Shown here one piece after another: positions 1-64,000 of a stretch of 64,000 bases of DNA. The notes under the pieces were generated by a model. That model did not search any database and was not told the origin of the DNA. It saw nothing but the letters and a program-made list of their open reading frames with translations. The translations under genes were made by a program, and so were the position numbers. The DNA lies in the sequence record PQ657772.1, one strand, 5' to 3'. Positions within the stretch are counted from its first letter, which is position 1; each line of letters opens with the position of its first letter.

Positions 1-276
1 AATATCTTCGATGTATAAACAGATTCCACCTCGATCATTTAACACAAGCCAATCACCAAAACCACAACTGATGTTGCATATATTAAATTCTTCAATACCA
101 TCCGGTGAATACGCAATGAATGGACATATTTCATCTGATATACCATTTACATAGTTATTACATATTAAATCAAATGTATGTGAACTATAAGAATTATCAG
201 TACTGAAAATGTGCATTAATGAACTAGATAGAATTACTATTGTTTTTTCCCACATTTTTAAAAAATCGTTATTCAC
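1..276 (-). CDS. Hypothetical protein, truncated by window edge
   Basis: Manual translation: GGAG RBS, GTG start, frame open to position 1 (MNNDFLKMWEKT...). Confidence 0.7.
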   Translation of the reverse strand, partial: MNNDFLKMWEKTIVILSSSLMHIFSTDNSYSSHTFDLICNNYVNGISDEICPFIAYSPDGIEEFNICNISCGFGDWLVLNDRGGICLYIEDI

Positions 277-307
277 AACAACTACTCCATGTCAGTGTTG
301 TAATTAA

Positions 308-335
308 ATTATATCACCGAATCAAGATATGTCTC
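308..335 (-). promoter_or_regulatory. Extended -10 sigma70-type promoter
   Basis: Minus strand GAGACA-16 nt-TATAAT preceded by TGA; same layout as 14843-14870. Confidence 0.5.
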
Positions 336-639
336 ATGAGATTCGCATTTCATCCAGATATAAACTACATGCTTCGAAATTGTTGTCAGCACTTAAACCT
401 AAATCAACCATCAGACCACAATGCGTTCCACAGAATTTCTTTATGTATAGTTTCTTATTGTTTGTACCTAAGTCGTATACATATTCATTTTCGAAAATAG
501 TTTTTAAATCATTACAAATACTTTTTACTATCTTCATTACATCATTATGATACTCATATGGTATTCCATCTAGTTCATCAATGATAATAGCAAAACCATT
601 GTCATAGTACTTTAGTTTATTGAATGTTTGTATATCCAT
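334..639 (-). CDS. Hypothetical protein
   Basis: ORF tiles with neighbours. Confidence 0.75.
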   Translation of the reverse strand: MDIQTFNKLKYYDNGFAIIIDELDGIPYEYHNDVMKIVKSICNDLKTIFENEYVYDLGTNNKKLYIKKFCGTHCGLMVDLGLSADNNFEACSLYLDEMRIS

Positions 640-936
640 TTAATATATAATCTCACTTACTTCTATGGTGTAGACACCATCATCAGTCATTAATCTAACT
701 GCAACTTTAATATTACTAGACATTCGTGTAACTATCAATCCAATAATTATACCATTCTTTAAAGTACCATTATGGTATCTAACTTTTACTTCAGTTTTAT
801 TATCAATTAAGTATCTTCTAATTATGTGTATTTCCGTTCTAAACAGTTCTAAATAAACTTCACTATACTCCTTATCAGAACCATCAGCACAGCTATACAA
901 TAAATGTACCTGTTCTAACAAAAGTTTTAAATTCAT
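640..936 (-). CDS. Hypothetical helix + small beta-barrel type protein
   Basis: ORF tiles with neighbours; pattern resembles 9.2-11.4 kb family. Confidence 0.75.
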   Translation of the reverse strand: MNLKLLLEQVHLLYSCADGSDKEYSEVYLELFRTEIHIIRRYLIDNKTEVKVRYHNGTLKNGIIIGLIVTRMSSNIKVAVRLMTDDGVYTIEVSEIIY

Positions 937-1235
937 AAGAACCTCACAGATTTAATATTACTTGTTACATGTTTAAACACAGTGTTATTGAATACATAAC
1001 AAATAGTATTAAGAGATTTATAAAAATTAACATCAGTTATTACTGCTTTGGAACCATTGATTAAGCACTGTGATGACGGTAATTTATTTTCTAATATATT
1101 CTTTTCATCTGAACAAAGTGTTCCAATACAATCATAATATAAAGGCTCACCAACTTTATCAGTACTAAGAAAATCGAAAGCAAGATCATCTATTAGTTTT
1201 ATGTAATTGAATAAATTTTGATAGTACTCATTCAT
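933..1235 (-). CDS. Hypothetical protein
   Basis: Start moved to MNEYYQN to remove overlap. Confidence 0.7.
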   Translation of the reverse strand: MNEYYQNLFNYIKLIDDLAFDFLSTDKVGEPLYYDCIGTLCSDEKNILENKLPSSQCLINGSKAVITDVNFYKSLNTICYVFNNTVFKHVTSNIKSVRFL

Positions 1236-1479
1236 TGTCAATCCTCTTGAATTTAGCATTATTCGAATAAGTATATGAATGTCCAAAATCATTTACACCA
1301 TGCACATTCAATACACCGTCGATGAAATAGATTCGGTCAATGGTGAGTTCACGTTTATAATCCGAATCATCATACCAGCACAGAACACGAATACCTTTGT
1401 ACTTTGTCGTTAGCTCTTTTTCTAATGTAACTAAGTACTCGACATAACTTTTGAATAGCTCTAAGTCCTGTTCAAACAT
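1228..1479 (-). CDS. Hypothetical protein
   Basis: Tiling ORF. Confidence 0.75.
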   Translation of the reverse strand: MFEQDLELFKSYVEYLVTLEKELTTKYKGIRVLCWYDDSDYKRELTIDRIYFIDGVLNVHGVNDFGHSYTYSNNAKFKRIDNE

Positions 1480-1739
1480 CAGTGTTCCTCGTATAATTCC
1501 ATGTCATCAACTCCAACTTGGCGAATTGCAGTACTTCTTTTAAATGTACCTTTTTCATATAAACATACAGTTAAACGTATTTCACACTTCAATGCACTGT
1601 AATAAATCATATCAATAACACCATATGTTTCATACATTTCTAAGTATACATTTCGTCCTAAGTACTTTTCTTCTAAATCAGTAATTAGACTATTGATAAG
1701 ATTACCTATCTGTGATATATCTGTGTGAAATTTATCCAT
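1479..1739 (-). CDS. Hypothetical protein
   Basis: Tiling ORF, TAATG coupling. Confidence 0.75.
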   Translation of the reverse strand: MDKFHTDISQIGNLINSLITDLEEKYLGRNVYLEMYETYGVIDMIYYSALKCEIRLTVCLYEKGTFKRSTAIRQVGVDDMELYEEH

Positions 1740-1915
1740 TACAATAATCCTCTCACATAAAACATTGATGAAAATAGATAATCTTCAGTACTGGAATTTA
1801 GTAGTTTATTAAAATTATAATTTTTATGTTTATTTTCATACAAAGACATTCTGTAGTATCTTTCTATATTTTCTAAGTAGTCTTTTCGTAATAACATCTG
1901 TGTTGTTACATTCAC
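1739..1915 (-). CDS. 58-aa hypothetical protein (not in ORF track)
   Basis: GTG start after AAGG; fills gap; STEDYLFSSMFY resembles degenerate FQxS motif. Confidence 0.6.
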   Translation of the reverse strand: MNVTTQMLLRKDYLENIERYYRMSLYENKHKNYNFNKLLNSSTEDYLFSSMFYVRGLL

Positions 1916-1928
1916 TATAATGTACCTT

Positions 1929-1961
1929 AAAAGAAAAAGGGACCAATATATGATCCCTTTT
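1929..1961 (-). terminator. Intrinsic terminator after pseT
   Basis: AAAAGGGATCA-TATAT-TGGTCCCTTTT followed by T run on minus strand. Confidence 0.75.
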
Positions 1962-1964
1962 GTA

Positions 1965-2897
1965 TTAGAAATTTCCTTCAGCCACTTGGAAAACTTTCAA
2001 CCCAAGTAGCTTACGCCACATGAATACAACTTGATTGCGGTCATCATAAACCTTTTTAACATCGTAATGATCAACCACATTTTTCATGTACAGGTCGAAT
2101 TTTACAACATCATCAGGACGTTTATCATCAATGTCTCGCATAAACAATGCATCATAAGGAACACCCCAATTCTTAAGCCACTGTTCGGTGTCAGCACGAC
2201 ACCCTTCAGTACGCCCACTCATGACGATAATCTTGCGTTTATGAAAAACTGCTTCTGCGATAATAGACAAAATAACTTCTTCGTCTGGTGTATCCTGGAG
2301 TACAGTACTTTCATCGAACGGGTTACGGCCCCATTTATGAGCAAGAGTACCGTCGATATCAACGATAATAGCAGCTTCTCGTGAATTACCATAGTAACCA
2401 ATGTGCAATGCTTTACTATAATAGTACGTATCTGCCATAGTGTCAATGATATTATCTTGTACTGAACGCTCACGCTGGAGGTTATATTTCTTACAAAGTT
2501 TTACGAACTCTTTAATCTTAAAGAATTCATGAACATCTGCACCACGGTCTTCATTAGGTACAAAATCATCATAGAAGTTCTTTTCTTTGTAATCATAACC
2601 ATTATCTATAGCCCATACTTTCCATAGATTACGGAAATGTTGTTTAAGGTTCGTATCGGATATGATGATGTTCCAACCATTCTCTGCGGCTGAATTTGCT
2701 GCACTGAACTGTAAATTAGTTACGTACTGCTCATTAGCATCGTTGAATTTGTAAGCATCATGTGACCCAGCCATAGATTCACGAATATCATCACGGTTGA
2801 TGTTGATAGTCTTGGATTTGGCTTTTTTAATCTCTTGCACTGCCCATGTAGTTTTACCACACCCAGGCAATCCAACTGTTAGTGTGATAGTTGGCAT
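1965..2897 (-). CDS. pseT: Polynucleotide 5'-kinase / 3'-phosphatase (T4 PseT-like)
   Basis: P-loop GLPGCGKT, INRDDIR, HAD motif DIDGTLA, SGR, YDDR. Confidence 0.93.
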   Translation of the reverse strand: MPTITLTVGLPGCGKTTWAVQEIKKAKSKTININRDDIRESMAGSHDAYKFNDANEQYVTNLQFSAANSAAENGWNIIISDTNLKQHFRNLWKVWAIDNGYDYKEKNFYDDFVPNEDRGADVHEFFKIKEFVKLCKKYNLQRERSVQDNIIDTMADTYYYSKALHIGYYGNSREAAIIVDIDGTLAHKWGRNPFDESTVLQDTPDEEVILSIIAEAVFHKRKIIVMSGRTEGCRADTEQWLKNWGVPYDALFMRDIDDKRPDDVVKFDLYMKNVVDHYDVKKVYDDRNQVVFMWRKLLGLKVFQVAEGNF

Positions 2898-2900
2898 CCA

Positions 2901-3230
2901 TTAATCCTCTAAAAATTTAACATGCTCTATATTATGATAGGTGAGCCATTCCTGTGGTGTTCCCTTGCGTATTAAAACACCAATATACGCAATACCATTA
3001 ATTAGACCATTACTATCAGTATTCACATCAACTTTCACAATCTCGGAATCGTACCAGTGTTTGAATGTGTAATCCCAACATCTGACTTTCTTTCCAATAA
3101 GATTGCTCTTGTATTTGTCAATCATTTCATCGACGATAGTTTGTACTGAATTTTTAATTTCAGCTTCTACTGACTTTATATGTAGTAAATTACTTTGTGC
3201 ATTGTTTATCATTGTATTTCCCAATCCCAA
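2901..3230 (-). CDS. Hypothetical protein
   Basis: Tiling ORF. Confidence 0.7.
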   Translation of the reverse strand: MGLGNTMINNAQSNLLHIKSVEAEIKNSVQTIVDEMIDKYKSNLIGKKVRCWDYTFKHWYDSEIVKVDVNTDSNGLINGIAYIGVLIRKGTPQEWLTYHNIEHVKFLED

Positions 3231-3426
3231 ATCGCTTGGAGATTTTCACAAGTACAGATTCATCACAACGAATACTAGCAGTATCATTGGATGAACTGTA
3301 CTTTAATGGGGTCCACTGTAATTGAGATTCTTCTAGGAACTTGATACATCTGAAATAATCTTTCAAGGAAAGAAATTTAACTACTGACATATCCTGAACA
3401 ATACTATGCTGAACTTCAACTTTCAT
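3190..3426 (-). CDS. Hypothetical protein
   Basis: Tiling ORF with GGAG RBS. Confidence 0.65.
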   Translation of the reverse strand: MKVEVQHSIVQDMSVVKFLSLKDYFRCIKFLEESQLQWTPLKYSSSNDTASIRCDESVLVKISKRFGIGKYNDKQCTK

Positions 3427-3435
3427 ATGAACTCC

Positions 3436-3693
3436 TTATAGTGGGTCGAATTTATTTTCACGTTTCGATGTATAGCGAGTTACATCATGTATTCTCGGCT
3501 TAACACCTTTTGGTTTCCTTTTCTTCTTGTATTCAGTACTACTACACCCGAAAGTATTCTCGATTCGTTTCTTACTAATCTTCACACCTTTCTTAGAGCG
3601 TTTGTGCTGTAATTCATCGATTTCTTCTTGTATTTTCCTGAATTCTGTCGGAGAAAGGGAACCGTCATTTTTATACTTAGGTTTAGCCATCAC
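3436..3693 (-). CDS. Small lysine/arginine-rich protein
   Basis: Strongly basic composition; AGGAG RBS. Confidence 0.7.
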   Translation of the reverse strand: MMAKPKYKNDGSLSPTEFRKIQEEIDELQHKRSKKGVKISKKRIENTFGCSSTEYKKKRKPKGVKPRIHDVTRYTSKRENKFDPL

Positions 3694-3719
3694 TTCTCCT
3701 TGTGCTAGGCTAGATAGTA

Positions 3720-4862
3720 CTAAAAATCCTTTAGTACAATTTTCATGTACTTAATAAGAGTCTCTTTGTAATCGACTTTCTTATTGTTGTACATTGCAAA
3801 GGCCAAGCCCTGACGATTCAGTTCATTAGTTAAACACTCCTGAACCTTCTTAGCGAATTCCTTTCGCTCCAAGTGCTTGTGTTCCTTGACGAAGCTTTCA
3901 ACTTCATCTTGTAAAGCATTATAGCACGAAAAGACTAGTTGTTCCATTCTTAATATCTTTTGGGTAGCATATTCGTCAGTACTGAACAACTGTTTTAAAT
4001 CATCACTCGAACCATTTAATACAGCTTCATATAAATGGGAATCGATTATAATACTGTCTTTCGTTAAATGCAAAGAACAATACCAGTCGGTTTTGATTTT
4101 GCACATTGTACCATTATTTAGGATGCACACAAAACCTTCAATGTCAAGCATTTTCTTAACTTCTTCAACACTTTCTTTGAATGTAGCACGAACAGGGAAA
4201 GTGTAATGAATATCTTTACCTGTCATGTTAGTACTGTACTGTGCAAGGCATGGAAACTTGTTACGTAATGCAGAACCACATAATAGTTCACCACTCTTGC
4301 GATGGCGAACGTTTAGTACAAATATTTGTTCAACCTGGTATGGTAATACAATACGGTACTCTGGACTTGTATACTCCAGATTAACAGTATAGCCCAAACG
4401 GTCTGCTTCGTCAATGTATTGATACAAATTTTGGTTCTCATTGAGAAGACGAGTACTGTTAATCGCATGATCTGAATACAATGCAGTATGTGATTTACAA
4501 CGAATTACACCATCATTATCACGGTAAGTACTGATTACTGAACCATCCAACTTAGGCATCACTACTGTAATGTCATCGAATGTGGTATCAGCAGGGAACA
4601 TTGTAGCAGGATTTTCGTAAGCATTGAAGAACTTTTTCATAGTACGAGCAGCACAACGAATCATATCACCGTCTTCATCAATTTCCCACATAGAACCACG
4701 TGTTTCTAATGCATTGGGTTGCATGAAATCGGTATATGATGCTAGACGATAACTGAATACACGATACGTTCCACCAGCAGGACTTTTATGATCCACATAA
4801 AAGAAAGCCTCACGGGTATTACATAAGTGCATTAAATCTTCATATATTTGTAAAAGGGTCAT
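3720..4862 (-). CDS. rnlA: RNA ligase 1 (T4 Rnl1/gp63-like)
   Basis: Motif I PKLDGS, KFFN, LEYTSPEYRIV, EGFV, KIKTDWY; near pseT. Confidence 0.92.
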   Translation of the reverse strand: MTLLQIYEDLMHLCNTREAFFYVDHKSPAGGTYRVFSYRLASYTDFMQPNALETRGSMWEIDEDGDMIRCAARTMKKFFNAYENPATMFPADTTFDDITVVMPKLDGSVISTYRDNDGVIRCKSHTALYSDHAINSTRLLNENQNLYQYIDEADRLGYTVNLEYTSPEYRIVLPYQVEQIFVLNVRHRKSGELLCGSALRNKFPCLAQYSTNMTGKDIHYTFPVRATFKESVEEVKKMLDIEGFVCILNNGTMCKIKTDWYCSLHLTKDSIIIDSHLYEAVLNGSSDDLKQLFSTDEYATQKILRMEQLVFSCYNALQDEVESFVKEHKHLERKEFAKKVQECLTNELNRQGLAFAMYNNKKVDYKETLIKYMKIVLKDF

Positions 4863-5122
4863 TTTATTACCTCTATATCTACATCTGTGCCATAGTAGGA
4901 AACGTAACCATTATCCGACTTACATTGAATTGATAACTCAGATTCATAGTATGTTACTTTGATCACTGTTAGTACTTTTTCTTCAATTTCTCCCGTTAAA
5001 TAATCCATTTCACGAACACGAACATTGGTTCCTTTTGGGAGTTCTTGTGCAATTTTATTAACAAGTTCAAAAGCAGCTTCTTCAAGTGTGTGCAACAATT
5101 GCAATCTATCTTGGATATTCAT
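4859..5122 (-). CDS. Hypothetical protein
   Basis: Start moved to MNIQDRL after GGTGG RBS. Confidence 0.7.
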   Translation of the reverse strand: MNIQDRLQLLHTLEEAAFELVNKIAQELPKGTNVRVREMDYLTGEIEEKVLTVIKVTYYESELSIQCKSDNGYVSYYGTDVDIEVIK

Positions 5123-5123
5123 A

Positions 5124-5813
5124 TTATTTCCACCAAGTTGTATCTCGACCACCAGACAAAGATTCGTTGTACTGATGCCTGAAATTAGTATTTGGATTAT
5201 TTGTCATTGTACTAATAAAATCAAATTTAACATTCTCTTGAATGTAATTAATAACATTATCTTTAAATTTAATAGTACTGAAGTCTAAATCTAAATGTTC
5301 ATACAATACAGGATGACAAAACTCATGTGTACGCAATGATGGCATGGTATCCTTAATGTATTGCACAGTGTTAATCATTGCATTGTACTCAGGCATAGCA
5401 CGCATCATCATTAGCTGAAAGTGTTCTTCCTCTGACATTGACTCATCCAAATCAATAACGACTTCATCATTTTTAGAGTCATATACTTTAATGGAACTCT
5501 TTGTTGGATCAAGCATAGCCCACTCTGGATACAGGCATGTTTTCCAAAAAGGATTATTGCACTGAAACATACTAATGAGATTTTGATTTTTATCAAAAAT
5601 AGCAAATCCAAGATCCGAACTTGGCTGTACTTCACATACACAAATATCATAAGGGGAGTCTTCAGTACTGAATGAACCAACTACATTTGATATATGTGAA
5701 TATGGAGTTTCTCTTGATTTTAATTCAAAGGCTCTCTCCATACGATTAACCTGTGGTTGTAATGTAATTACACCCCTCAGTACATATAAAATTCTATCTA
5801 AATCTTTAATCAA
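5124..5813 (-). CDS. FQxS-motif family protein (outlier copy)
   Basis: Motif MSEEEHFQLMMM. Confidence 0.7.
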   Translation of the reverse strand: MIKDLDRILYVLRGVITLQPQVNRMERAFELKSRETPYSHISNVVGSFSTEDSPYDICVCEVQPSSDLGFAIFDKNQNLISMFQCNNPFWKTCLYPEWAMLDPTKSSIKVYDSKNDEVVIDLDESMSEEEHFQLMMMRAMPEYNAMINTVQYIKDTMPSLRTHEFCHPVLYEHLDLDFSTIKFKDNVINYIQENVKFDFISTMTNNPNTNFRHQYNESLSGGRDTTWWK

Positions 5814-6388
5814 AATTCTATCCCCGTATCGGTTAATTTCGTTCCGTCCATGTACTTAACAGTTATTTCCATGCGTCGATCAGTACTCAATTTTTGAAGA
5901 TCATTGAAGTACAATTTAAATTCTTCAAAGAACTCAAGTGGTGGAATATCGTATAAAGTACTAATCTGGAAGTGCTCAGGTAATCCAAATTTCAATATAT
6001 CAATCTTAGGCATAAGTCCATCGGCTGCTGCACCTTCTGGTGTACTGCTGTCTGCTACATAAAACATAGAATTACCATGACGCTGGATAACGAATACGCA
6101 ATCATCTTCACTTATATAAATCATATTTCCAAGGTATGGATCGTTATCACACCAATTGTCATGGACGAATTGATCAACTTGAAGTAAATCGTGTATAATT
6201 CCTCGACCACTATCATCGATTCTAATATGTAAACCAGAATCACTTTTGCTCAACCAGCGGTATTTTGAATCACATCCTGATTCCATAACTGGATATTTTG
6301 AAAAATTCATATCAGTACCATTATAAAACCAATCGTACCACTCATTACGCATACTAATCAGCTTAGTACTTAATTCTAATACATTCAT
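5810..6388 (-). CDS. FQxS-motif family protein (outlier copy)
   Basis: Motif LPEHFQISTLYD. Confidence 0.7.
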   Translation of the reverse strand: MNVLELSTKLISMRNEWYDWFYNGTDMNFSKYPVMESGCDSKYRWLSKSDSGLHIRIDDSGRGIIHDLLQVDQFVHDNWCDNDPYLGNMIYISEDDCVFVIQRHGNSMFYVADSSTPEGAAADGLMPKIDILKFGLPEHFQISTLYDIPPLEFFEEFKLYFNDLQKLSTDRRMEITVKYMDGTKLTDTGIEF

Positions 6389-6395
6389 TTTAGTT

Positions 6396-6698
6396 TTATC
6401 CTCTTAGTTTAATAGTACTGGCTGGGTAATCTACCATAGTACTATCTGGTAATCCTATACAGTAATAAGGAAAATATCCCATCTTTATATTAATACCAAT
6501 TAACATTCCAGTTTTATATGAAGTATTAATTTCATAGTGGTCGTCTATATCAACCGCCAGTCCATATAAGGATATGTTACAATCCTTGATGTATCGTTCA
6601 AAGATTTTATACATTGATGTGTATACAGTTCCATTGGATTCTCTCACTACATCAGCCAACAACTTTATAGTACTGTTAATCAAATCTATACTAATCAT
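6396..6698 (-). CDS. Hypothetical protein
   Basis: Tiling ORF. Confidence 0.7.
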   Translation of the reverse strand: MISIDLINSTIKLLADVVRESNGTVYTSMYKIFERYIKDCNISLYGLAVDIDDHYEINTSYKTGMLIGINIKMGYFPYYCIGLPDSTMVDYPASTIKLRG

Positions 6699-6711
6699 CT
6701 TTGTACCTGCG

Positions 6712-6737
6712 AAAAAAGACCAGCAAACGCTGGCCTC
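6712..6737 (-). terminator. Intrinsic terminator
   Basis: GAGGCCAGC-GTTT-GCTGGTCTT then T run. Confidence 0.75.
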
Positions 6738-6742
6738 AAAAT

Positions 6743-7024: not shown

Positions 7025-7033
7025 AACAGTTCC

Positions 7034-57196: not shown

Positions 57197-57213
57197 TTTA
57201 TTACTCCTTTTAG

Positions 57214-57271
57214 TGGGGGAGGATATCTCCCCCTATGCAAAACATTATACTTTGTTTTAGTTATTATGCAA
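57214..57271 (-). promoter_or_regulatory. Early promoter + stem-loop cassette
   Basis: TTGCAT-16-TATAAT, hairpin GGGGGAGATATCCTCCCCC. Confidence 0.8.
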
Positions 57272-57527
57272 GTACTTTTTTCATATAAACATTAAATTCT
57301 ACACCGCCGTAACCTTCCACGATGATATGTTTTGCGTTATCACGTTTGCACATAGTGAAACCATCGTTTACGTGTTTTGCATTTTCCAGGGCGACATCAC
57401 CGATAGCGGCACATACGGCACTAATAACAGTATTCCGCAAAGTACTGGTATCATTGGCGGTCATAGTAGTTTGCAGTACTACGTTGTCGTATACGTGTGC
57501 ATTGATAGTGATTTCGATAGTGTTCAT
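57264..57527 (-). CDS. Early-region hypothetical protein
   Basis: AGGAG RBS; start moved to MNTIEIT. Confidence 0.75.
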   Translation of the reverse strand: MNTIEITINAHVYDNVVLQTTMTANDTSTLRNTVISAVCAAIGDVALENAKHVNDGFTMCKRDNAKHIIVEGYGGVEFNVYMKKVLA

Positions 57528-57545
57528 GGTGTATCTCCTGGACTT

Positions 57546-57607
57546 GAGGGGAAACCATTTCCCCCTCTCGATATAAAACATTATACGTTAATCTAACTAC
57601 AATGCAA
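57546..57607 (-). promoter_or_regulatory. Early promoter + stem-loop cassette
   Basis: TTGCAT-16-TATAAT, hairpin GAGGGGGAAATGGTTTCCCCTC. Confidence 0.8.
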
Positions 57608-57614
57608 GTACTTT

Positions 57615-57806
57615 TTAAATTTTATTTCCGATATAGTCCGGCATGTTCTTTTCAGTCATACGCTTTGCTAATGTCTGCATATGGCTTATAGCGTTCAAGG
57701 TGTCTTCCTCCAGGGATGAATCAAGATAATCAGGATCATTCTTCACCTTGCAATGATTATGATATCGTAGTACTGCCAGTACTTTTTTAACTTCTTCTAC
57801 TGTCAT
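57615..57806 (-). CDS. Early-region hypothetical protein
   Basis: Tiling ORF. Confidence 0.7.
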   Translation of the reverse strand: MTVEEVKKVLAVLRYHNHCKVKNDPDYLDSSLEEDTLNAISHMQTLAKRMTEKNMPDYIGNKI

Positions 57807-58075
57807 AATAAGTACCCCACTTCGTTAGCTTTCAGGTTAGTATCAATCATCAGTGGATTTTTGTAGTTCACAAAACGAGTAGTTTTCTCGATAGCGAAAC
57901 CCATATAATCCAGCTTACTAACAGTACATTCATTCTTAAAAACTTCTTTCGCTGCATCGATGGCTGATTGCATGGATAACCGACCATCTAAATTAATGTT
58001 TCCAAATGATCCACCAGCAGAAGTAGGATTACCGTTCATATCTTTAATGATCATAGTAGCGGAGTAGCTGGACAT
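57803..58075 (-). CDS. Early-region hypothetical protein
   Basis: AAGGA RBS after cassette. Confidence 0.75.
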   Translation of the reverse strand: MSSYSATMIIKDMNGNPTSAGGSFGNINLDGRLSMQSAIDAAKEVFKNECTVSKLDYMGFAIEKTTRFVNYKNPLMIDTNLKANEVGYLL

Positions 58076-58099
58076 AATTTTGTTTCCTTTTATTGGTGT

Positions 58100-58164
58100 G
58101 GGGAGAACTATTCTCCCCTTGATGTAAACTATTATACAGTACTGATATACTTTGTCAAATACTT
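58100..58164 (-). promoter_or_regulatory. Early promoter + stem-loop cassette (65 bp identical to 58594..58658)
   Basis: TTGACA-AAGTATATCAGTACTG-TATAAT, hairpin GGGGAGAATAGTTCTCCCC. Confidence 0.85.
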
Positions 58165-58572
58165 TTATTCGCCCATATAGATTAGATTATCATCGCCTAC
58201 ATAGGGATCGCAAACGTTGATTTCTTCGCAGTACTTAGTGAATATATCATCATAGTGACCGATATCACGATCCCAAAAACCAGTGCCGTGACCTTCGCGA
58301 GTAAGAAAGAGATCATGACCTGCATGACTATAAGTATAATCAGGATTATGGTGTTTTTGTACTGTTTCCATATCTTCACCATGTACAGCAAGGAAACGTG
58401 AACATGCAATCACTGCCGCTTGATGGGCTTGCTCTGATAATTCATAATCTTCCAGGTAATCGCCGTTCTCATTGTGTACAGTACTGAATTGCATAGCTTC
58501 AATGTAACCAGCGACCATTGCAGCATGATTTTTATCGTTGGCGATGGACCGAGCTTGATTAGTAGTAGTCAT
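58165..58572 (-). CDS. Early-region protein with GHDxxLTRxGHGxGFWDR motif
   Basis: AGHDLFLTREGHGTGFWDRD; function unknown. Confidence 0.75.
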   Translation of the reverse strand: MTTTNQARSIANDKNHAAMVAGYIEAMQFSTVHNENGDYLEDYELSEQAHQAAVIACSRFLAVHGEDMETVQKHHNPDYTYSHAGHDLFLTREGHGTGFWDRDIGHYDDIFTKYCEEINVCDPYVGDDNLIYMGE

Positions 58573-58593
58573 GATTTTATTCCTTTTAGTATC

Positions 58594-58658
58594 GGGGAGA
58601 ACTATTCTCCCCTTGATGTAAACTATTATACAGTACTGATATACTTTGTCAAATACTT
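58594..58658 (-). promoter_or_regulatory. Early promoter + stem-loop cassette (65 bp identical to 58100..58164)
   Basis: Exact direct repeat. Confidence 0.85.
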
Positions 58659-58878
58659 AATTACGGATAAAGTGATAAAGACCATTATCATCATTAACGC
58701 CCCATACTGATTTACCATTTAAACCAGTGAAGCCGGATTGCAATTCAATATGGAAACCGTTAGCATCAACGACGAAAACTTTTTTATTTTCATCCCGATA
58801 GCATTGATATTCTTCACCTGCTTTAAATGCTGCATCATTCAGAAGATTTGAAGCGTGAACGCAGGTCATAGTAGTCAT
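58657..58878 (-). CDS. Early-region hypothetical protein
   Basis: AAGGA RBS; start moved to MTTMTC. Confidence 0.72.
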   Translation of the reverse strand: MTTMTCVHASNLLNDAAFKAGEEYQCYRDENKKVFVVDANGFHIELQSGFTGLNGKSVWGVNDDNGLYHFIRN

Positions 58879-58900
58879 CGTCTTGATTCCTTTTAGTACC

Positions 58901-58961
58901 AGGGAGAACCATTTCCCCCTCTCGATATAAAACATTATACGCTCATTGAGATAGTTTGCAA
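58901..58961 (-). promoter_or_regulatory. Early promoter + stem-loop cassette
   Basis: TTGCAA-16-TATAAT, hairpin AGGGGGAAATGGTTCTCCCT. Confidence 0.8.
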
Positions 58962-59006
58962 GTACTTTTTATCAAATAGTTTTCAGTACTGAATACTTAT
59001 ATAATA

Positions 59007-59094
59007 GATACACTTCCGCACCCTATGGGTCAGTGAGTTATCTCTCAATGGATATATAATAGCAAAGGGACTGACCGGAGTCAATCCCTTTTTT
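59007..59094 (-). repeat. Terminator/promoter/small-RNA module, copy 2
   Basis: 41-bp core identical; downstream ACCCATAGGGT hairpin. Confidence 0.85.
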
Positions 59095-59102
59095 AATCTT
59101 TT

Positions 59103-59687
59103 TTATCGTGTTACCTTACTTGCTGCCACATCACGCTTTTTATAGTACTGATTCCAGATATTGCTGGTTAAACCGTAATCAAGTACTTTAATAAGTCCAT
59201 TACGATCCTGGCCGATATTCTGTTTTCTGATATCTCTTATCGTTAGTGTTGATAATGTATCATCAACGTGTTGTAGTGCATCAGCAAAGCGGTGCTGGCG
59301 TTCGATTGCATTACGTTTAATATTGTACTTTAATTCATTGCACGCGTTTACGTGCTTCACACTGCCTTTGCTTGCAGTACTCAACCGATCCATAACGATA
59401 AACATATTATCAGGATCGCATAAATGCATATGCACCTTTGCAAAGTACTGTTTCAACTGAGGGCGGTCATAGTCTAAAAAATTCCATACCTTACATTCAG
59501 TTTCATTTTGTTCGACACCCGCATCACAATTCGCGACCTTAATCACTAACCGATCATTTAAAGCGAATACTATACGGGAAGAACCAGCACCGATGATCTC
59601 CAGGCCAGCTAACCGACAAGCTGAAAGGATCTCTTTGTTGGTTTCCATTTCTGACAGTGTACGGATGAATTTAGTATATTTACGCAT
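59103..59687 (-). CDS. Protein kinase-like (ePK/APH-fold) early protein
   Basis: Gly-rich IGAGSSRIVF, VIKVA, NETE, catalytic DIRKQNIG, VLDYGL; start moved to MRKYTK. Confidence 0.78.
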   Translation of the reverse strand: MRKYTKFIRTLSEMETNKEILSACRLAGLEIIGAGSSRIVFALNDRLVIKVANCDAGVEQNETECKVWNFLDYDRPQLKQYFAKVHMHLCDPDNMFIVMDRLSTASKGSVKHVNACNELKYNIKRNAIERQHRFADALQHVDDTLSTLTIRDIRKQNIGQDRNGLIKVLDYGLTSNIWNQYYKKRDVAASKVTR

Positions 59688-59718
59688 TGCATGTTCTCCT
59701 TGAGTTAATGAAACTATA

Positions 59719-59961
59719 TTACAGTACTTTACTATCAATGGCAACTACTTTTTTAACATTAACGGCGTGGATCACTTCCTTAGTGTTTTTAGTACTGAAT
59801 ACTTTCGCCGCTCCTTGTTCGACCGTGATACGATAGCGACCATTAACATCAACCATATTAATAAAGTCCGGCGTGCTGAATGGTGTTGTTTTACATTTGA
59901 GTACTGTTAACAGTTCCACCAGCGATGTAGTTTCTTTGATACGTTTTTCTAAAGTAATCAT
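59719..59961 (-). CDS. Early-region hypothetical protein
   Basis: GGGGGGA RBS; promoter TTGACA-17-TATTAT at 59991-60019. Confidence 0.72.
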   Translation of the reverse strand: MITLEKRIKETTSLVELLTVLKCKTTPFSTPDFINMVDVNGRYRITVEQGAAKVFSTKNTKEVIHAVNVKKVVAIDSKVL

Positions 59962-60015
59962 TTTGTTTCCCCCCGTGTTGGTATGTGTACATAATACTAA
60001 AACAATTGAGTACTG

Positions 60016-60270
60016 TCAACGTGATATTAGTTTTATTTTCTTATTGTATTGTTGATGCTCATAAAGGTTTATCTTTCCTGTGTTCTCGATTACTATCCTG
60101 TTGTTAGTGTCCACGTCGATTACACGCAGTTTCCCGTTGCTTAACTTCCTAGGTAATAGGTTACCATTAATAAACTCATTAGCAAGCTGTACGGCCTTTG
60201 TGATGATTCTCTGAGGTGCTTTATAGTGTACCCGTAAGATGTTATCTTTATATAGTTGAACCTTAATCAT
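60016..60270 (-). CDS. Possible ParE/RelE-like toxin-fold protein
   Basis: P.RI..KA......G....RKL......V....RI......EHQQYN pattern recalled from phage ParE-like family; not searched. Confidence 0.45.
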   Translation of the reverse strand: MIKVQLYKDNILRVHYKAPQRIITKAVQLANEFINGNLLPRKLSNGKLRVIDVDTNNRIVIENTGKINLYEHQQYNKKIKLISR

Positions 60271-60284
60271 TTTGTTTGTCCTAT

Positions 60285-60310
60285 AAAAAAGGCGGGAACT
60301 GATCCCGCCG
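60285..60310 (-). terminator. Intrinsic terminator
   Basis: GGCGGGA-TCAGT-TCCCGCC then TTTTTT. Confidence 0.8.
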
Positions 60311-60331
60311 TGTTGTTAGTACTGCAAGTTA

Positions 60332-60736
60332 TTAGATAACCTGGCGGCGTTTACTGTATACTGTTACACGATTACCCTTACGGTCGTGTCGGATCTCTTT
60401 CTGGTTGCGAATCAGTTCACTTGGACGCTTAAGGTTTGCCAGGTGATCCGCGTGAGTCCATGCATTTGCGTTAACTGTAACTTCAATATCAGAACCTTTC
60501 AAGAAGTCATCTTGAGCGTTCAGTACTTCAGCCAGTTCTTGAGCTTGCTTTAGTTCTGCTGCTGTAAGTACAGGCTCAGGTGAATTCACAATATCAGAGA
60601 TCTCTTTGAACTGTACCGCCCAGCGTTTACCAGTAGGAGAATCTTTACCCATGTCTTTAAATGTTTCACCTTCCTCACGGGCAACGATGCGAGCTTGTTC
60701 ACGGGTAGCGAAGAATTTAGTAATCATGGTGTACAT
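60332..60736 (-). CDS. Early-region hypothetical protein
   Basis: AGGA RBS; promoter TTGACA-17-TATAAT at 60776-60804. Confidence 0.78.
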   Translation of the reverse strand: MYTMITKFFATREQARIVAREEGETFKDMGKDSPTGKRWAVQFKEISDIVNSPEPVLTAAELKQAQELAEVLNAQDDFLKGSDIEVTVNANAWTHADHLANLKRPSELIRNQKEIRHDRKGNRVTVYSKRRQVI

Positions 60737-60826
60737 CCTATTAGTTAAGTTAATTAGTACTACAAGTTAGAGTCTATTATAAAGTACTATCTGGGCAATG
60801 TCAAATAGTACTTTAAATGGATTCTA

Positions 60827-61150
60827 TTACATGTCTTTCTTACGTTTTACATCGTAGTAGCGAACTGTAATTTCTTTGTTGATCTCTTTCTCAATTCTGT
60901 GTAGTACTTTCTCTTTCGGGTTGAAACCTATTACAGTTTCCTTAATGATTTCTAAACCCGTGTACTCACCTTGTGTGCCGTAACCGTATGTAAAGGTTTC
61001 GTGTCCCAGGTCTTCCCAGCGATCACCAATCAATGCGGACACGTAGCAGGAGTGGTAAGTATTGCCGTGGCTATCAGTCCACCGATTAACTTTAATGTCA
61101 AAGGAGGTTACAATTTTCAGTTCTACTTTCTGGGTAAGGATCATAGCCAT
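60827..61150 (-). CDS. Early-region hypothetical protein
   Basis: Follows cassette 61174..61234. Confidence 0.78.
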   Translation of the reverse strand: MAMILTQKVELKIVTSFDIKVNRWTDSHGNTYHSCYVSALIGDRWEDLGHETFTYGYGTQGEYTGLEIIKETVIGFNPKEKVLHRIEKEINKEITVRYYDVKRKKDM

Positions 61151-61173
61151 TTTTATTTCTCTCTCTTTGTTAG

Positions 61174-61234
61174 GAGGGGAACCATTCCCCTCGCTTGATG
61201 TAAACTATTATACAGTACTAAGATACTTTGTCAA
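61174..61234 (-). promoter_or_regulatory. Early promoter + stem-loop cassette
   Basis: TTGACA-16-TATAAT with AGTACT in spacer; near-identical to 61444..61505. Confidence 0.82.
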
Positions 61235-61237
61235 TAC

Positions 61238-61420
61238 TTATTTTTTGGAAAGTTTACGCATTAATTCTACGCTTTCTTGTGAACGTTTTGCTACTTGACA
61301 AGCTGCATGGGCAGTAAACATTTTTGTATAGTCTGACGCTTTGCCACCGAACCGAGCGGCACGTTCACGGGCACTTGGAACTAATACGATTTCTTTCTTA
61401 CAGATAGTGCACTTAGCCAT
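61238..61420 (-). CDS. Small zinc-binding (CxxC...HxxC) early protein
   Basis: MAKCTICKK...TAHAAC; start moved. Confidence 0.7.
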   Translation of the reverse strand: MAKCTICKKEIVLVPSARERAARFGGKASDYTKMFTAHAACQVAKRSQESVELMRKLSKK

Positions 61421-61443
61421 TTTAATTTCTCTCTCTTTGTTAG

Positions 61444-61505
61444 GAGGGGAACCGTTTCCCCTCACTTGATGTAAACTATTATACAGTACTAAGATACTTT
61501 GTCAA
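61444..61505 (-). promoter_or_regulatory. Early promoter + stem-loop cassette
   Basis: TTGACA-16-TATAAT, hairpin GAGGGGAAACGGTTCCCCTC. Confidence 0.82.
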
Positions 61506-61508
61506 TAC

Positions 61509-61784
61509 TTAAGTATTGTAAATGTCGTGAATAGTGATAAAGTTTTTACGACCGTAAACATGTAAATCAGTATCAATGTAGTGCTTATCAAGTACATCCT
61601 CGACGCTTAAAGACGTGTCGTGAATATCTTCATAAAATTGTGGATCAACAATCGTGCTTAAGTCATCTGGCGTTAACTTATCGTTAAGGCATTGAACCGC
61701 CTGGATATCTGCTTCACGTTTCCATTGTTCCAGATTAGTAGTCAGTACTTGCTCGATTTCGTTAGCTGTAAGTAAAGTCCGCAT
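61509..61784 (-). CDS. Early-region acidic protein
   Basis: AAGGA RBS; promoter TTGACA-16-TATAAT at 61818-61845. Confidence 0.75.
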   Translation of the reverse strand: MRTLLTANEIEQVLTTNLEQWKREADIQAVQCLNDKLTPDDLSTIVDPQFYEDIHDTSLSVEDVLDKHYIDTDLHVYGRKNFITIHDIYNT

Positions 61785-61894
61785 TTTAATGTTTCCTTAT
61801 CAGTGGTTGATGTAAGTATTATACTCGTTTACTTTCTATTGTCAAACTATTTTATCAGGGGAGTTTTTCGTATGTCTTACTCCTGGACTACTTA

Positions 61895-61961
61895 ACGGGG
61901 TTACTTATTTCGTTCCCCGTCCTGATGTAAAACATTATACGCTTATCGTGATACTTTGCAA
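61895..61961 (-). promoter_or_regulatory. Early promoter + stem-loop cassette with no downstream ORF
   Basis: TTGCAA-16-TATAAT, hairpin, AGGAG, but no ATG/GTG ORF before the next promoter. Confidence 0.7.
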
Positions 61962-62018
61962 GTACTTTTTTAAAAATAGTTTTCAGTACTTGATAGTACT
62001 AGCCACCAGCAAACAATA

Positions 62019-62100
62019 GATACATTTATGCACCCGGTGGGCTAATTTGTTTCTATGCGTATATAATAGCAAAGGGACTGACCGGAGTCAATCCCTTTTT
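62019..62100 (-). repeat. Terminator/promoter/small-RNA module, copy 3
   Basis: 41-bp core identical; downstream GCCCACCGGGT hairpin. Confidence 0.85.
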
Positions 62101-62109
62101 CAATTATTT

Positions 62110-62259
62110 TTAAACTTCTTTCGGGTTGCGATATGTGATAGCGTTCGGGTACATTTGTTTAATGTTATTCCATGCCTGGTTAACATTATAACCACTTGAT
62201 CGAATCAGTTGGTTATTACCGACACCTTGAAACACTACTTCAAATAAGAATTCTTTCAT
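62110..62259 (-). CDS. 49-aa early protein (not in ORF track)
   Basis: MKEFLFEVVFQGVGNNQLIRSSGYNVNQAWNNIKQMYPNAITYRNPKEV; ATGA overlap. Confidence 0.65.
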   Translation of the reverse strand: MKEFLFEVVFQGVGNNQLIRSSGYNVNQAWNNIKQMYPNAITYRNPKEV

Positions 62260-62429
62260 GCTTTCACCTCGCTATCTGCTTTGCCTTTACGCCAGGCCGT
62301 TGCTAATTGTTCGCGTTGCCATAAGTCGAGTGATACGTAAAGTTTTGCATTATCACCCTTCGGATATTCGCCAGTAGTACCAATCCGATAAAACAGATCT
62401 TTCAGTACTGTTAATTCTACCTGGACCAT
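62256..62429 (-). CDS. Early-region hypothetical protein
   Basis: GAGGA RBS; start moved to MVQVELTV. Confidence 0.7.
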   Translation of the reverse strand: MVQVELTVLKDLFYRIGTTGEYPKGDNAKLYVSLDLWQREQLATAWRKGKADSEVKA

Positions 62430-62450
62430 TATACTTTCCTCTTTGTTAGG

Positions 62451-62508
62451 AGGGGAACTATTCCCCTTCCGATATAAAACATTATACACTTTATTCAGTA
62501 CTGTGCAA
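62451..62508 (-). promoter_or_regulatory. Early promoter + stem-loop cassette
   Basis: TTGCAC-16-TATAAT, hairpin AGGGGAATAGTTCCCCT. Confidence 0.8.
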
Positions 62509-62515
62509 GTACTTT

Positions 62516-62728
62516 TTAATCTTTCAGCCAATGATCCTGAATGAATTTTTCACCGGAACCGTGCTGCATTGATTGTAACAGACGTTCGCGATGAGCGGCG
62601 GCGAATTGCTCAGTACTATGCGTTACACCTGGTTGATATCTGGATTCACCATTTGGGGCGATGTATTGTACATCCCACGGTTTTTCGTTAGTATCAGACC
62701 ATTTACGAACGATTAGTTGACCTTGCAT
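62516..62728 (-). CDS. Early-region hypothetical protein
   Basis: GAGGA RBS. Confidence 0.72.
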   Translation of the reverse strand: MQGQLIVRKWSDTNEKPWDVQYIAPNGESRYQPGVTHSTEQFAAAHRERLLQSMQHGSGEKFIQDHWLKD

Positions 62729-62745
62729 TTTTCTTTCCTCTTAGT

Positions 62746-62805
62746 GGGGAGAATCATTTCTCCCCTTCATGTAAACTATTATACAGTACTATAATCTATT
62801 GTCCA
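62746..62805 (-). promoter_or_regulatory. Early promoter + stem-loop cassette
   Basis: TGGACA-16-TATAAT, hairpin GGGGAGAAATGATTCTCCCC. Confidence 0.78.
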
Positions 62806-62813
62806 GTACTTTT

Positions 62814-63002
62814 TTACAGTTTATGAATTAATTCTTTATCTAAGCGATAGCGTACATTATTAATGGTAACAGCATTATTTTTAATGCTACGCTGTACGGG
62901 TCCACCAGCAATAACAAACGTTGCTTTATTGCCCCGAACAATGATAGCACTTCCAGGATTACCGAAATCATCTTGTACTAAAATACTTGATAAGTTTTCC
63001 AT
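62814..63002 (-). CDS. Early-region hypothetical protein
   Basis: GAGGA RBS. Confidence 0.72.
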   Translation of the reverse strand: MENLSSILVQDDFGNPGSAIIVRGNKATFVIAGGPVQRSIKNNAVTINNVRYRLDKELIHKL

Positions 63003-63019
63003 TTTTATTTCCTCTTAGT

Positions 63020-63077
63020 AGGGGAAGATGTTTCCCCTTGATGCAAGTACTATAACAGTACTGAAAACTAAATGCAA
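63020..63077 (-). promoter_or_regulatory. Early promoter + stem-loop cassette
   Basis: TTGCAT-17-TATAGT, hairpin AGGGGAAACATCTTCCCCT. Confidence 0.75.
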
Positions 63078-63080
63078 GTA

Positions 63081-63437
63081 CTATGATAAAATCATGATAG
63101 GATATTCACTATCGATCAGTACCTCGAATCCGAAACCTTCGTACCATTCTTTAAGATTAAAGGCGTTATCTTCTCCCGTATCGCATTCTAAGATGATACA
63201 ATCTGAATCATCGGCGGCATCAATAAAGGCATTCATTAATTCGTTACCTTCACCATTGCCCCGACTATCAGGATCAACATAAAGAGAATCAATAAACGCT
63301 ACACGGTCATAATCAAGATCCGGTGCAATGATTCCACGTTTAACAAACCAGTACTGCAATTGTGCTACTTTGCCCTGTACCTGATAACCAGTGATCTCGC
63401 CATTGTCAGTAGTACGCGTGATATGTTGTATTCCCAT
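63081..63437 (-). CDS. GNAT-family acetyltransferase
   Basis: IDSLYVDPDSRGNGEG (motif A, RGxGxG), LKEWYEGFGF; promoter TTGACA-16-TATAAT at 63467-63494. Confidence 0.8.
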   Translation of the reverse strand: MGIQHITRTTDNGEITGYQVQGKVAQLQYWFVKRGIIAPDLDYDRVAFIDSLYVDPDSRGNGEGNELMNAFIDAADDSDCIILECDTGEDNAFNLKEWYEGFGFEVLIDSEYPIMILS

Positions 63438-63500
63438 GATTACTATCCTCAGTTAAGATATAAAACATTATACACTATCTTTCAGTACTGTCAATACTTT

Positions 63501-63758
63501 TTATCTCATAGATCTATGCCAACAATTACGCGGATCTCTTTTAAAAGTACTATCATGATCCTCCTGGCAAGTAATACAATACATGCACCCTATAACGGCC
63601 TGGCGTCGATTCTCAGGGATTTTATCGCCGCAGTCGAGGCAATGTACCAGTGATTCTCTTTGTGCGTTAATTTGCTTTCTAGCGTGGTTAACGGCTGCCT
63701 GAATCACTGCGTGAATCTCGTCTTGTTCGGCCCCGTCTTTCGCGTATCCTACTGCCAT
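63501..63758 (-). CDS. TraR/DksA-family C4 zinc-finger protein
   Basis: N-terminal DGAEQDEI, then CLDCGDKIPENRRQAVIGCMYCITCQ. Confidence 0.85.
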   Translation of the reverse strand: MAVGYAKDGAEQDEIHAVIQAAVNHARKQINAQRESLVHCLDCGDKIPENRRQAVIGCMYCITCQEDHDSTFKRDPRNCWHRSMR

Positions 63759-63919
63759 TATTTTAACCTCATTATAAAAATACTATAGTACTGTAATGCT
63801 ACAATAATACTACTAGTGTTTATCTTATTCAAACCATATGATACTACATATCCACCAGCATTACCACGGATAGTAACGCCTTTGTACTGTCTATATAAAT
63901 TCAACTGCGTATATTGCCT

Positions 63920-63991
63920 TTGATCAAGAATTGATCAGAATTATACGCCTTATGCTAAATTGATCCAGTACTTTTTGATCATTTATTGATC
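63920..63991. repeat. Five TTGATC (GATC) copies in 72 bp
   Basis: At 63920, 63931, 63960, 63975, 63986. Confidence 0.7.
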
Positions 63992-64000
63992 GATATTATA

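Follow-up and report, generated by a model that had tools for sequence, protein, structure and literature searches.

What keeps the palindrome AGTACT, which is the ScaI/Eco255I restriction site, at high density in the DNA of a jumbo phage, and what might read it? We addressed this question in a 64,000-bp stretch of DNA (hereafter the window, by which we mean the whole stretch analyzed) that is identical in sequence to positions 292,445-356,444 of Escherichia phage EC.P1 (PQ657772.1; 356,444 bp). This phage, a jumbo myovirus, belongs to the PBECO4/121Q group (Asteriusvirus, "Rak2-like") and has relatives at 86-98% identity. The window has 156 annotated genes, every one on the minus strand, and with few exceptions they are small and have no assigned function. 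A close relative of EC.P1, fEgEco12, has direct terminal repeats of 20,993 bp (PMC13070987), and by coordinate mapping to that phage, the terminal repeat (~21 kb) occupies the window from ~53.7 kb to its end. A first-pass annotation, made from the letters alone, had described AGTACT as a highly iterated palindrome and had listed five phage systems that it might serve (DNA binding, nucleoid, modification, repair bias, or packaging) without choosing among them; our data favor a DNA-binding factor, argue against repair bias, and have no bearing on packaging.

The window holds 217 copies of AGTACT, compared with 21.4 expected from base composition, 17.0 ± 4.5 (maximum, 32) in 100 dinucleotide-preserving shuffles, and 40 under a second-order Markov model. 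Within genes, the count is 178, compared with 52.0 ± 6.2 when synonymous codons were shuffled with the proteins kept and 22.6 ± 4.6 when codon order was shuffled. Markov and codon-shuffled nulls had been named beforehand as the comparison in which the enrichment might vanish, and the excess survives both. Sites fall in all reading frames (73/40/64-65), as the first-pass annotation had stated, with a further 40 in non-coding DNA, and they are twice as dense between genes (6.1/kb) as within them (3.1/kb). Its spot counts were right for 1-2000 (n = 8) and 62001-64000 (n = 14), while 30001-32000 contains 9 copies and not 10. The pressure is strong enough to distort protein composition: the proteins of the window contain 146 Ser-Thr dipeptides where 73 are expected, and 161 Val-Leu dipeptides where 100 are expected. 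Phages are textbook cases of palindrome avoidance, and the contrast with this ordinary behavior, which had also been pointed out, is real in the window, where 26 of the 64 palindromic hexamers have no copy at all (~108 expected in sum). The absent palindromes are nearly all G+C-containing restriction sites; GGTACC and CGTACG are missing despite 587 occurrences of GTAC, and palindromes with GATC likewise fall below expectation.

The full motif is HAGTACTD, and its optimal form is CAGTACTG, which occurs 44 times in the window versus 0.7 expected; this is a 63-fold enrichment, compared with 10-fold for the hexamer. At base -1, C is found in 100 of 217 sites and G is disfavored (10/217); at base +6, G is found in 87 of 217 and C is disfavored (17/217), and GAGTACTC has no copy in the window. 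Two forms had earlier been named as frequent, and of these, CAGTACTG stands out as described, with TAGTACTA being merely moderately common (n = 10). The flank preferences do not differ between the strands, which is what a symmetric reader of duplex DNA would produce. Among the one-mismatch neighbors of AGTACT, 7 of 9 classes are enriched (1.3- to 3.4-fold) and none is strongly depleted (lowest, 0.64), which argues against conversion of neighbors into AGTACT, and the AGTACN hexamers are all ~2-fold enriched beyond the palindrome. In addition, site spacings of 20-24 bp are 2.5-fold over-represented genome-wide (32 versus 12.7 expected).

AGTACT is maintained by selection on the DNA itself and is not a by-product of composition or codon usage. 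In a comparison with PBECO4 (86% identity across 47.7 kb aligned), 114 of 143 aligned AGTACT sites are intact (80%), compared with 52% of all hexamers and 50% of those with matching composition. Third-codon positions are 89.4% identical inside sites versus 76.7% outside, and non-coding bases are identical in 46 of 46 cases inside sites versus 88.3% outside. Three of the four AGTACT sites in the RNA ligase gene are common to EC.P1 and CBB at 58% protein identity; other sites turn over at deep divergence while density stays high. The whole EC.P1 genome contains 975 copies (2.74/kb), which are present in every module, densest in and beside the terminal repeat (6-8/kb), and sparsest among replication genes (1-1.6/kb). 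The codon nulls, the excess conservation, and this distribution bear out the earlier view of AGTACT as a genome-wide, selected feature of the phage at the DNA level. In samples from six other phages, no hexamer exceeds its expectation as strongly as AGTACT, and the clade-wide excess spans five lineages and several host genera:

PBECO4: 148 AGTACT observed, 13 expected
Klebsiella RaK2: 73 observed, 6.4 expected
Pectobacterium CBB: 137 observed, 9 expected
Xanthomonas XbC2: 121 observed, 9 expected
Yersinia fHe-Yen9-04: 67 observed, 7.9 expected
Salmonella Munch: 43 observed, 8.6 expected

No enrichment was found in the sister jumbo phage PA5oct (1 versus 8.8 expected) or in T4 (4 versus 5.8). 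A 50-kb sample of E. coli K-12 contains 3 AGTACT (0.06/kb), ~45-fold sparser than the phage. E. coli K-12 is a host of phage Sharanji.

The sites in promoters are arranged in a way that points to regulation. In the terminal-repeat part of the window (54.7-64 kb), 18 of 21 intergenic regions have at least one AGTACT, inside sigma-70-type promoters, so the statement that the palindrome sits in or next to most early promoters holds there; the promoter-bearing gaps in 1-54 kb mostly have none. Across the EC.P1 genome, we found 243 strong promoter-like sequences, and 24 of these have a site that begins exactly 7-8 bp ahead of the -10 hexamer, against ~0.7 expected for each position (duplicated cassettes contribute to the peak, and the counts are thus not independent). 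Smaller clusters of positions lie at -16 to -18 and -27 to -31 from the -10 hexamer, overlapping or abutting the -35 element. In CBB, which belongs to a different genus, the terminal-repeat promoters read AGTACT-TTGACA-N10-AGTACT-T-TATAAT, with the sites 22 bp apart around the -35 element and spacer. The same layout is seen in the window:

56932..56959, minus strand: paired-site early promoter, AGTACT-A-TTGACA-N10-AGTACT-GA-TGTAAT, with sites at 56,932 and 56,954, 22 bp apart, around the -35 element and spacer
58138..58143, minus strand: the position seen most often in promoters, next to the -10 hexamer, TTGACA-N9-AGTACT-G-TATAAT; again at 58632, 61214, and 61485
60756..60812, minus strand: three-site promoter, with sites upstream of -35, abutting -10, and ~12 bp downstream of the likely start

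The promoter link drawn in the first-pass annotation is upheld as a matter of fixed positions, with the layout conserved across genera. By analogy with known operators, the fixed overlap with core promoter elements and the helical-phase pairs (22 bp, two helical turns) conserved in CBB indicate that the promoter sites are arranged as putative operators for a repressor.

Two other features of the early promoters deserve mention. At 55000-64000, a strong promoter followed by a G+C-rich stem-loop (e.g., GGGGAGAATAGTTCTCCCC) forms a cassette that precedes most small early genes. A second class of early promoter carries another palindrome, approximately GGGA-TTGAC-TCCGGTCAG-TCCC, which spans the -35 hexamer:

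56101-56346, 58936-59102, and 61785-62109 of the window: second promoter class
6495, 8419, 15175, 15768, 18807, and 19663 of CBB (L019): second promoter class

Its conservation between EC.P1 and CBB suggests a second regulator.

We propose that HAGTACTD is the site of a dimeric, sequence-specific DNA-binding factor, for which it would serve both as an early-promoter operator and as a dense mark of phage DNA. We put the probability of this reading at roughly 0.45, and it draws on the symmetry of the motif, its graded specificity, DNA-level selection, the fixed and paired promoter positions, and the contrast with host DNA. A symmetric dimer would bind duplex HAGTACTD, optimally as CAGTACTG, and selection would keep about one AGTACT per 300-370 bp over the whole phage genome. 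The factor might shut off or modulate the early sigma-70 promoters that carry sites. The ~940 other sites make phage DNA ~45 times denser in sites than host DNA, which would let the same factor cover or mark it selectively; its purpose might be silencing, protection, compaction, or a means of telling the two kinds of DNA apart. Islands devoid of AGTACT would escape the factor.

Two such islands exist, and the claim that AGTACT occurs throughout the segment fails for them. They are the only AGTACT gaps longer than 2.5 kb in the 356-kb genome, and they divide the window as follows:

1..37015: AGTACT-rich stretch, 139 sites (3.8/kb) in all frames, with ~85 small minus-strand genes
37016..46154, minus strand: island 1, no AGTACT; 46 AGTACA (5/kb), often as CAGTACAG, on the coding strand
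46155..48998: short stretch rich in AGTACT that separates the islands, 17 sites (6/kb), with members of paralogue families A and B
48999..54977, minus strand: island 2, no AGTACT and almost no AGTACA; ~25 tiny paralogous genes in tandem
54978..64000: densest stretch, inside the terminal repeat, 61 sites (6.8/kb), with repeated promoter and stem-loop cassettes

Island 1 has an iterated word of its own, at equal density. Its 46 copies of AGTACA, versus 4.4 expected, are all on the coding (minus) strand, with all genes there sharing that one strand, and they occupy all three frames and non-coding DNA; those within genes number 40, compared with 17.7 ± 3.5 after synonymous shuffling. In PBECO4, 68% of the copies are conserved, versus 43% for the background, and its own island 1 has 44 AGTACA on the same strand, 0 on the opposite strand, and 0 AGTACT. 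The island-1 genes are confined to Asteriusvirus-type phages, evolve fast, and are just 53-60% identical between sub-lineages, with the AGTACA pattern kept. Beyond island 1, AGTACA shows a mild strand asymmetry that comes partly from codon usage. We rejected the idea that AGTACA is AGTACT decayed through synonymous change, as it is enriched in protein-altering frames, exceeds the synonymous null, and has an orthologue that is never AGTACT. A search for a further variant island, of AGAACT, found scattered copies and no island.

Island 2 straddles the inner edge of the terminal repeat (~53.7 kb), and its genes encode products of 65-90 amino acids with an LGTNYQE motif and a median identity of 25%. 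Foreign origin or recent duplication does not explain the islands, whose genes are old paralogues of AGTACT-rich neighbors. Nor is avoidance of AGTACT provable in them: codon content predicts just 1.5-1.9 sites for the genes of each island, so they are without enrichment and do not demonstrably exclude the palindrome. A set of ~30 tandem paralogues of 65-90 amino acids with an invariant G-T-x-x-Q core extends over 47427-54749, with further members at 31940-32131 and in the C terminus of 45555-46364. For these tiny proteins, AlphaFold2 predicts with very high confidence (predicted local distance difference test, 97.8) a new four-helix fold with no significant PDB match; as they are restricted to Asteriusvirus-type phages, the tiny family A proteins were rejected as the clade-wide reader. 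Two more small-protein families, with 12 members of ~115 amino acids and 9 members of ~155 amino acids, are interleaved over 26 kb (22418-48349) and span the island 1 boundaries, and the members tested had no Pfam match.

We scanned public viral contigs for closely spaced CAGTACTG pairs. The scan returned jumbo-phage contigs and one family of ~32-kb contigs (42% GC). The latter represent temperate siphoviruses of a lambda-like kind; they encode a GpA-type terminase, a lambda-type portal, a tape measure, a J-like fiber, and a large serine integrase. Leclercia tamurae (H6S3) and a Leclercia metagenome-assembled genome carry such a prophage, inside which AGTACT stands at ~4/kb; it drops to zero in the flanking chromosome. 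All members with at least 64% capsid identity have AGTACT enriched 6- to 18-fold, as do three contigs with a different structural module and a related early region (11- to 17-fold). Relatives at 32-36% capsid identity have only 2 AGTACT in 17 loci, versus ~60 expected. The flank rule matches that of the jumbo phage, with C before the hexamer in 58-66% of sites for most members; typical members have 30-43 CAGTACTG per 21 kb, and GAGTACTC is nearly absent. Neither the complete genomes of E. coli nor the records of sequenced phages contain the prophage. One prophage end (L135 ~17688-18056) adjoins a truncated gene for a PHP-domain protein, which is probably the attachment site. One copy carries an ISL3-family insertion sequence (L137 2795-4015) without AGTACT excess, consistent with its recent arrival.

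When the two lineages were compared by tblastn, phmmer, and 178 family profiles, no shared protein emerged apart from a lysozyme (43% identity; EC.P1 180627-181115) and two sporadic mobile endonucleases. The latter are homing-type or HNH families shared sporadically between Rak2-like phages and AGTACT-rich siphoviruses:

7788..8711 of the window, minus strand: mobile (homing-type) endonuclease, absent from fEgEco12, with relatives in AGTACT-rich siphoviruses
L011 7751-8359 (CBB gp063), L148:3531-4409, L212:4514-5377, L213:2392-3015, and L214:13630-14241: relatives of the shared endonucleases

These endonucleases and the lysozyme imply that the two lineages share hosts and exchange genes. The finding also qualifies the earlier attribution of the palindrome to a phage system: AGTACT is a selected phage feature, and unrelated siphoviruses share the 8-mer, so the reader could be host-encoded. 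Since the identical 8-mer recurs in siphoviruses with no detectable shared DNA-binding protein, the reader may be a host protein found across Enterobacterales, or else a phage protein that is small, evolves fast, or has moved horizontally. A 266-amino-acid protein encoded beside the siphovirus terminase was considered and rejected as a general reader, as it is found in a minority of the enriched genomes and has remote homologues in AGTACT-poor contigs.

We postulate, as a broader reading, that CAGTACTG could be a shared "phage DNA code" of enterobacterial phages, in which one reader (a host or mobile phage protein) would act on motif-rich DNA, two lineages would have loaded the motif independently, and their relatives would have purged it. 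In such a conflict over marking and being marked, the motif would be a target for both sides, and the strand-specific AGTACA island would be one of its local dialects. We regard this as possible, with the odds clearly against it.

Known proteins were also considered as readers. SlmA is the one enterobacterial protein known for a site with an AGTACT core, GTGAGTACTCAC, and its binding depends on a flanking purine with GT/AC beyond it (PMC3020112). Positions 4-9 of that site accommodate AGTACT (AG-Y-R-CT core); the flanks of the EC.P1 sites, however, are R..Y in 119 of 975 and Y..R in 458 of 975, and full SlmA sites number 0 in 356 kb and 0 in three siphovirus loci. SlmA was therefore rejected on these flanks, namely the purine at position 3 and pyrimidine at position 10, and the GT and AC at 1-2 and 11-12. 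Motifs 18 bp apart would yield the LexA (SOS) box CTGT-N8-ACAG; only 3 such spacings occur in the jumbo genome, which is chance level, and LexA was rejected as well; a few such pairs are present in the temperate siphoviruses. As to methyltransferases, the window encodes one:

13101..13625, minus strand: DNA adenine methyltransferase of the Dam family (PF05869), the only methyltransferase of the window, beside a cytidylyltransferase in all sampled genera

Characterized PF05869 members act on GATC. No methyltransferase was recognized in the examined parts of the small prophage with Pfam, PHROGs, and NCBIfam, and the link to a methyltransferase suggested by the first-pass annotation finds no support here, as nothing ties the Dam-family enzyme to AGTACT.

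Upstream of a small hypothetical gene, this methyltransferase gene, and the cytidylyltransferase gene lies a gene-free gap of 684 nucleotides (14185-14868, minus strand), of which ~450 nucleotides are conserved in blocks across four genera at 73-85% DNA identity, with the neighboring proteins at ~40-58%:

L009 ~14150-14640, L011 ~12330-12700, L013 ~13800-14260, and L010 ~14380-14720: counterparts of the conserved gap

RNAalifold predicted 67 pairs on the four gap sequences, 18 of them with compensatory changes, and Rfam gave no match for the gap, even at E<=1. The gap is probably a structured RNA not yet described or an unrecognized intron-like element.

Several observations weigh against a dimeric binding factor. 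Two unrelated groups have one 8-mer and no shared DNA-binding protein, which is awkward for a phage-encoded reader. No reader was found among ~60 window and small-prophage proteins searched with Pfam, PHROGs, and NCBIfam, which matched just Dam, cytidylyltransferase, integrase, transposase, terminase, portal, and structural proteins; in the literature, we found no host protein with this site, and we know of none that recognizes CAGTACTG. The strong promoters hold just ~35 of the 975 sites, so that the function of the bulk is inferred, and the peak of promoter positions owes something to cassette duplication. Spacing is otherwise near random, and, above all, the asymmetric, strictly strand-specific AGTACA of island 1 is not explained by a simple symmetric dimer.

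Other explanations have to be set beside the binding factor. AGTACT could be an epigenetic mark, methylated by a phage or host enzyme for ScaI-type protection and/or as a methyl-dependent self mark; density would be selected since methyl-reading needs close sites, as Dam/SeqA/MutH need GATC. The identity of the hexamer with the ScaI/Eco255I site, the several orphan methyltransferases in the jumbo clade, and the strong avoidance of other palindromes in the window all speak for this view, and the purging in distant siphoviruses and depletion in PA5oct fit a real restriction pressure, which the enriched phages would need some way to resist. We nevertheless consider it unlikely: protection alone predicts neutrality rather than a 10- to 15-fold enrichment with flank preferences, methylation alone leaves the fixed promoter positions and 22-bp pairs unexplained, and neither the sole, Dam-family methyltransferase of the window nor the small prophage, with none recognized, supplies an obvious enzyme. 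RaK2 DNA has been reported as methylated, at other sites (PMC3622015), and fEgEco12 DNA is cut normally by ten restriction enzymes (PMC13070987), so this DNA is not broadly modified; we found no ScaI/RsaI digest or methylome of the Rak2-like clade in the literature. Alternatively, a directional single-strand word, (C)AGTAC, might be read by a translocating or strand-specific machine (a Chi-like helicase-nuclease, a primase, RNA polymerase on the non-template strand, or an RNA-level reader); the palindrome CAGTACTG would then simply be the form that puts the word on both strands at least cost. Such a signal would suit the coding-strand AGTACA of island 1 (46 versus 0-9 on the other strand; 44/0 in PBECO4), the ~2-fold enrichment of all AGTACN, and the independent use of host Chi by the phage at 14-fold excess. 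CTG, the E. coli DnaG start triplet, is on both strands of CAGTACTG, which is a lead only. The symmetric flank preferences, a 63-fold enrichment of the full palindrome that is far above two independent half-words, and the fixed -35/-10 positions and 22-bp pairing point instead to duplex binding; the AGTACA asymmetry is mild outside island 1. We hold a directional signal to be improbable.

Mimicry would account for the second carrier: the reader would be encoded only by the jumbo phages, whose self mark would spare or favor marked DNA during host takeover, and siphovirus prophages resident in the same hosts would have evolved the same mark so as to survive jumbo-phage infection or exploit it. 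The identical 8-mer and flank rule in lineages without a shared DNA-binding protein, the exchange of mobile endonucleases and lysozyme (which means that they meet in the same cells), and the sharp distinction between prophage and host chromosome agree with this. A 15-fold enrichment, however, would need frequent, strong selection from rare jumbo-phage encounters, host-DNA degradation or sparing in the jumbo clade is without direct evidence, and a host-encoded reader explains the pattern equally, which makes mimicry a long shot. A mutational origin, through very-short-patch-like repair or gene conversion of near-cognates into AGTACT, would yield excess site conservation without any binding function and has a precedent in cyanobacterial HIP1, for which biased repair or gene conversion has been proposed. 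It predicts depleted neighbors, which contradicts the enrichment of most neighbor classes; a prophage passively copied by the host keeps its enrichment while adjacent host DNA has none; the insertion sequence inside one prophage copy shows no excess; and paralogues within one genome differ sharply between islands and neighbors. We therefore rejected very-short-patch-type repair, and with it the repair bias that the first-pass annotation had entertained, a mutational origin in general being very improbable. Finally, an artefact of base composition, codon usage, or repeated sequence could be imagined, as AGT, ACT, GTA, and TAC are favored codons and as the promoter cassettes and paralogue arrays are repeated. 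Its probability is practically nil, for the composition and codon version is ruled out by the dinucleotide, Markov, and two codon-aware shuffles, the sites lie in every frame and in non-coding DNA, and AGTACT ranks first among hexamers in every module of the genome and in the six other phages.

The host Chi octamer, GCTGGTGG, is itself in excess in EC.P1, with 33 copies in the genome versus ~2.3 expected (14-fold), 25 of the 33 being on the minus strand. The copies cluster in the terminal-repeat region, examples in the window being:

~56210, ~61890, ~62900, and ~63870 of the window, minus strand: Chi octamers

This excess looks like mimicry of the host RecBCD self signal.

Our data have implications for a large clade of jumbo phages that are therapeutic candidates, and for an unrelated prophage family, in which a restriction-site palindrome is held at 10-15 times chance. 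The polarity between enriched lineages and AGTACT-free sister lineages implies that some reader interacts with this DNA strongly and in a way not recognized before. A phage-encoded reader would explain how jumbo DNA without modification is distinguished from that of the host and how early transcription is shut down; a host-encoded one would be a cellular factor that phages either court or flee. AGTACT also offers a simple signature for spotting such phages and prophages in sequence data, and it calls for caution when these phage genomes are recoded or engineered.

We found no description of AGTACT or CAGTACTG enrichment in phages in the literature searched, and the known systems resemble it in part. 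A restriction target of the ScaI/Eco255I kind has the identical hexamer, and avoidance in sister phage lineages fits restriction pressure; restriction accounts for avoidance and not for enrichment, flanks, or promoter positions, and we recognized no ScaI-like genes. SlmA sites are palindromes too, read by a dimeric helix-turn-helix protein, and in the host, they are few and dispersed; SlmA needs a flanking purine where the phage sites favor C and avoid G. In T4-type phages, cassettes known as promoter-early stem-loop (PeSL) elements are also repeated promoter and stem-loop units beside small early genes, like those at 55-64 kb; they account for the repetition of promoters but not for the ~900 in-gene sites or for the motif in unrelated siphoviruses. 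Chi, the Neisseria and Haemophilus uptake sequences, and GATC with Dam/SeqA/MutH are alike in being dense, selected self-recognition words. These words are rich in the genomes of host cells, whereas AGTACT is scarce there (0.06/kb in the host) and abundant just in particular phages, and most of these words are asymmetric and orientation-biased, whereas a palindrome can have no such bias. The p6 protein of the Bacillus phage phi29 and TF1 of SPO1, abundant DNA-binding proteins with a preference for phage DNA, share the proposed logic of genome-wide binding, distinction of phage from host DNA, and shut-off of early promoters; they recognize DNA shape, supercoiling, or hydroxymethyluracil rather than an iterated palindrome, and the likeness is a functional inference.

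The closest parallel is cyanobacterial HIP1 (GCGATCGC), which is also a short palindrome over-represented genome-wide, in all frames, and conserved across relatives. AGTACT behaves as a HIP1-type element in that it exceeds composition, Markov, and codon nulls, is dispersed in all frames and intergenic DNA, and is conserved as a trait in relatives. HIP1, however, belongs to cellular genomes and is linked to cognate methyltransferases, whereas AGTACT belongs to a virulent jumbo clade and to temperate siphoviruses, with no cognate methyltransferase found. Unlike HIP1, AGTACT has neighbors that are not depleted, takes fixed promoter positions, and is purged entirely in relatives. Collectively, what is new with respect to HIP1-type elements is that the carriers are phages, that they form two unrelated lineages whose relatives go to the opposite extreme, that the sites have a promoter-operator layout, and that a strand-specific variant exists.

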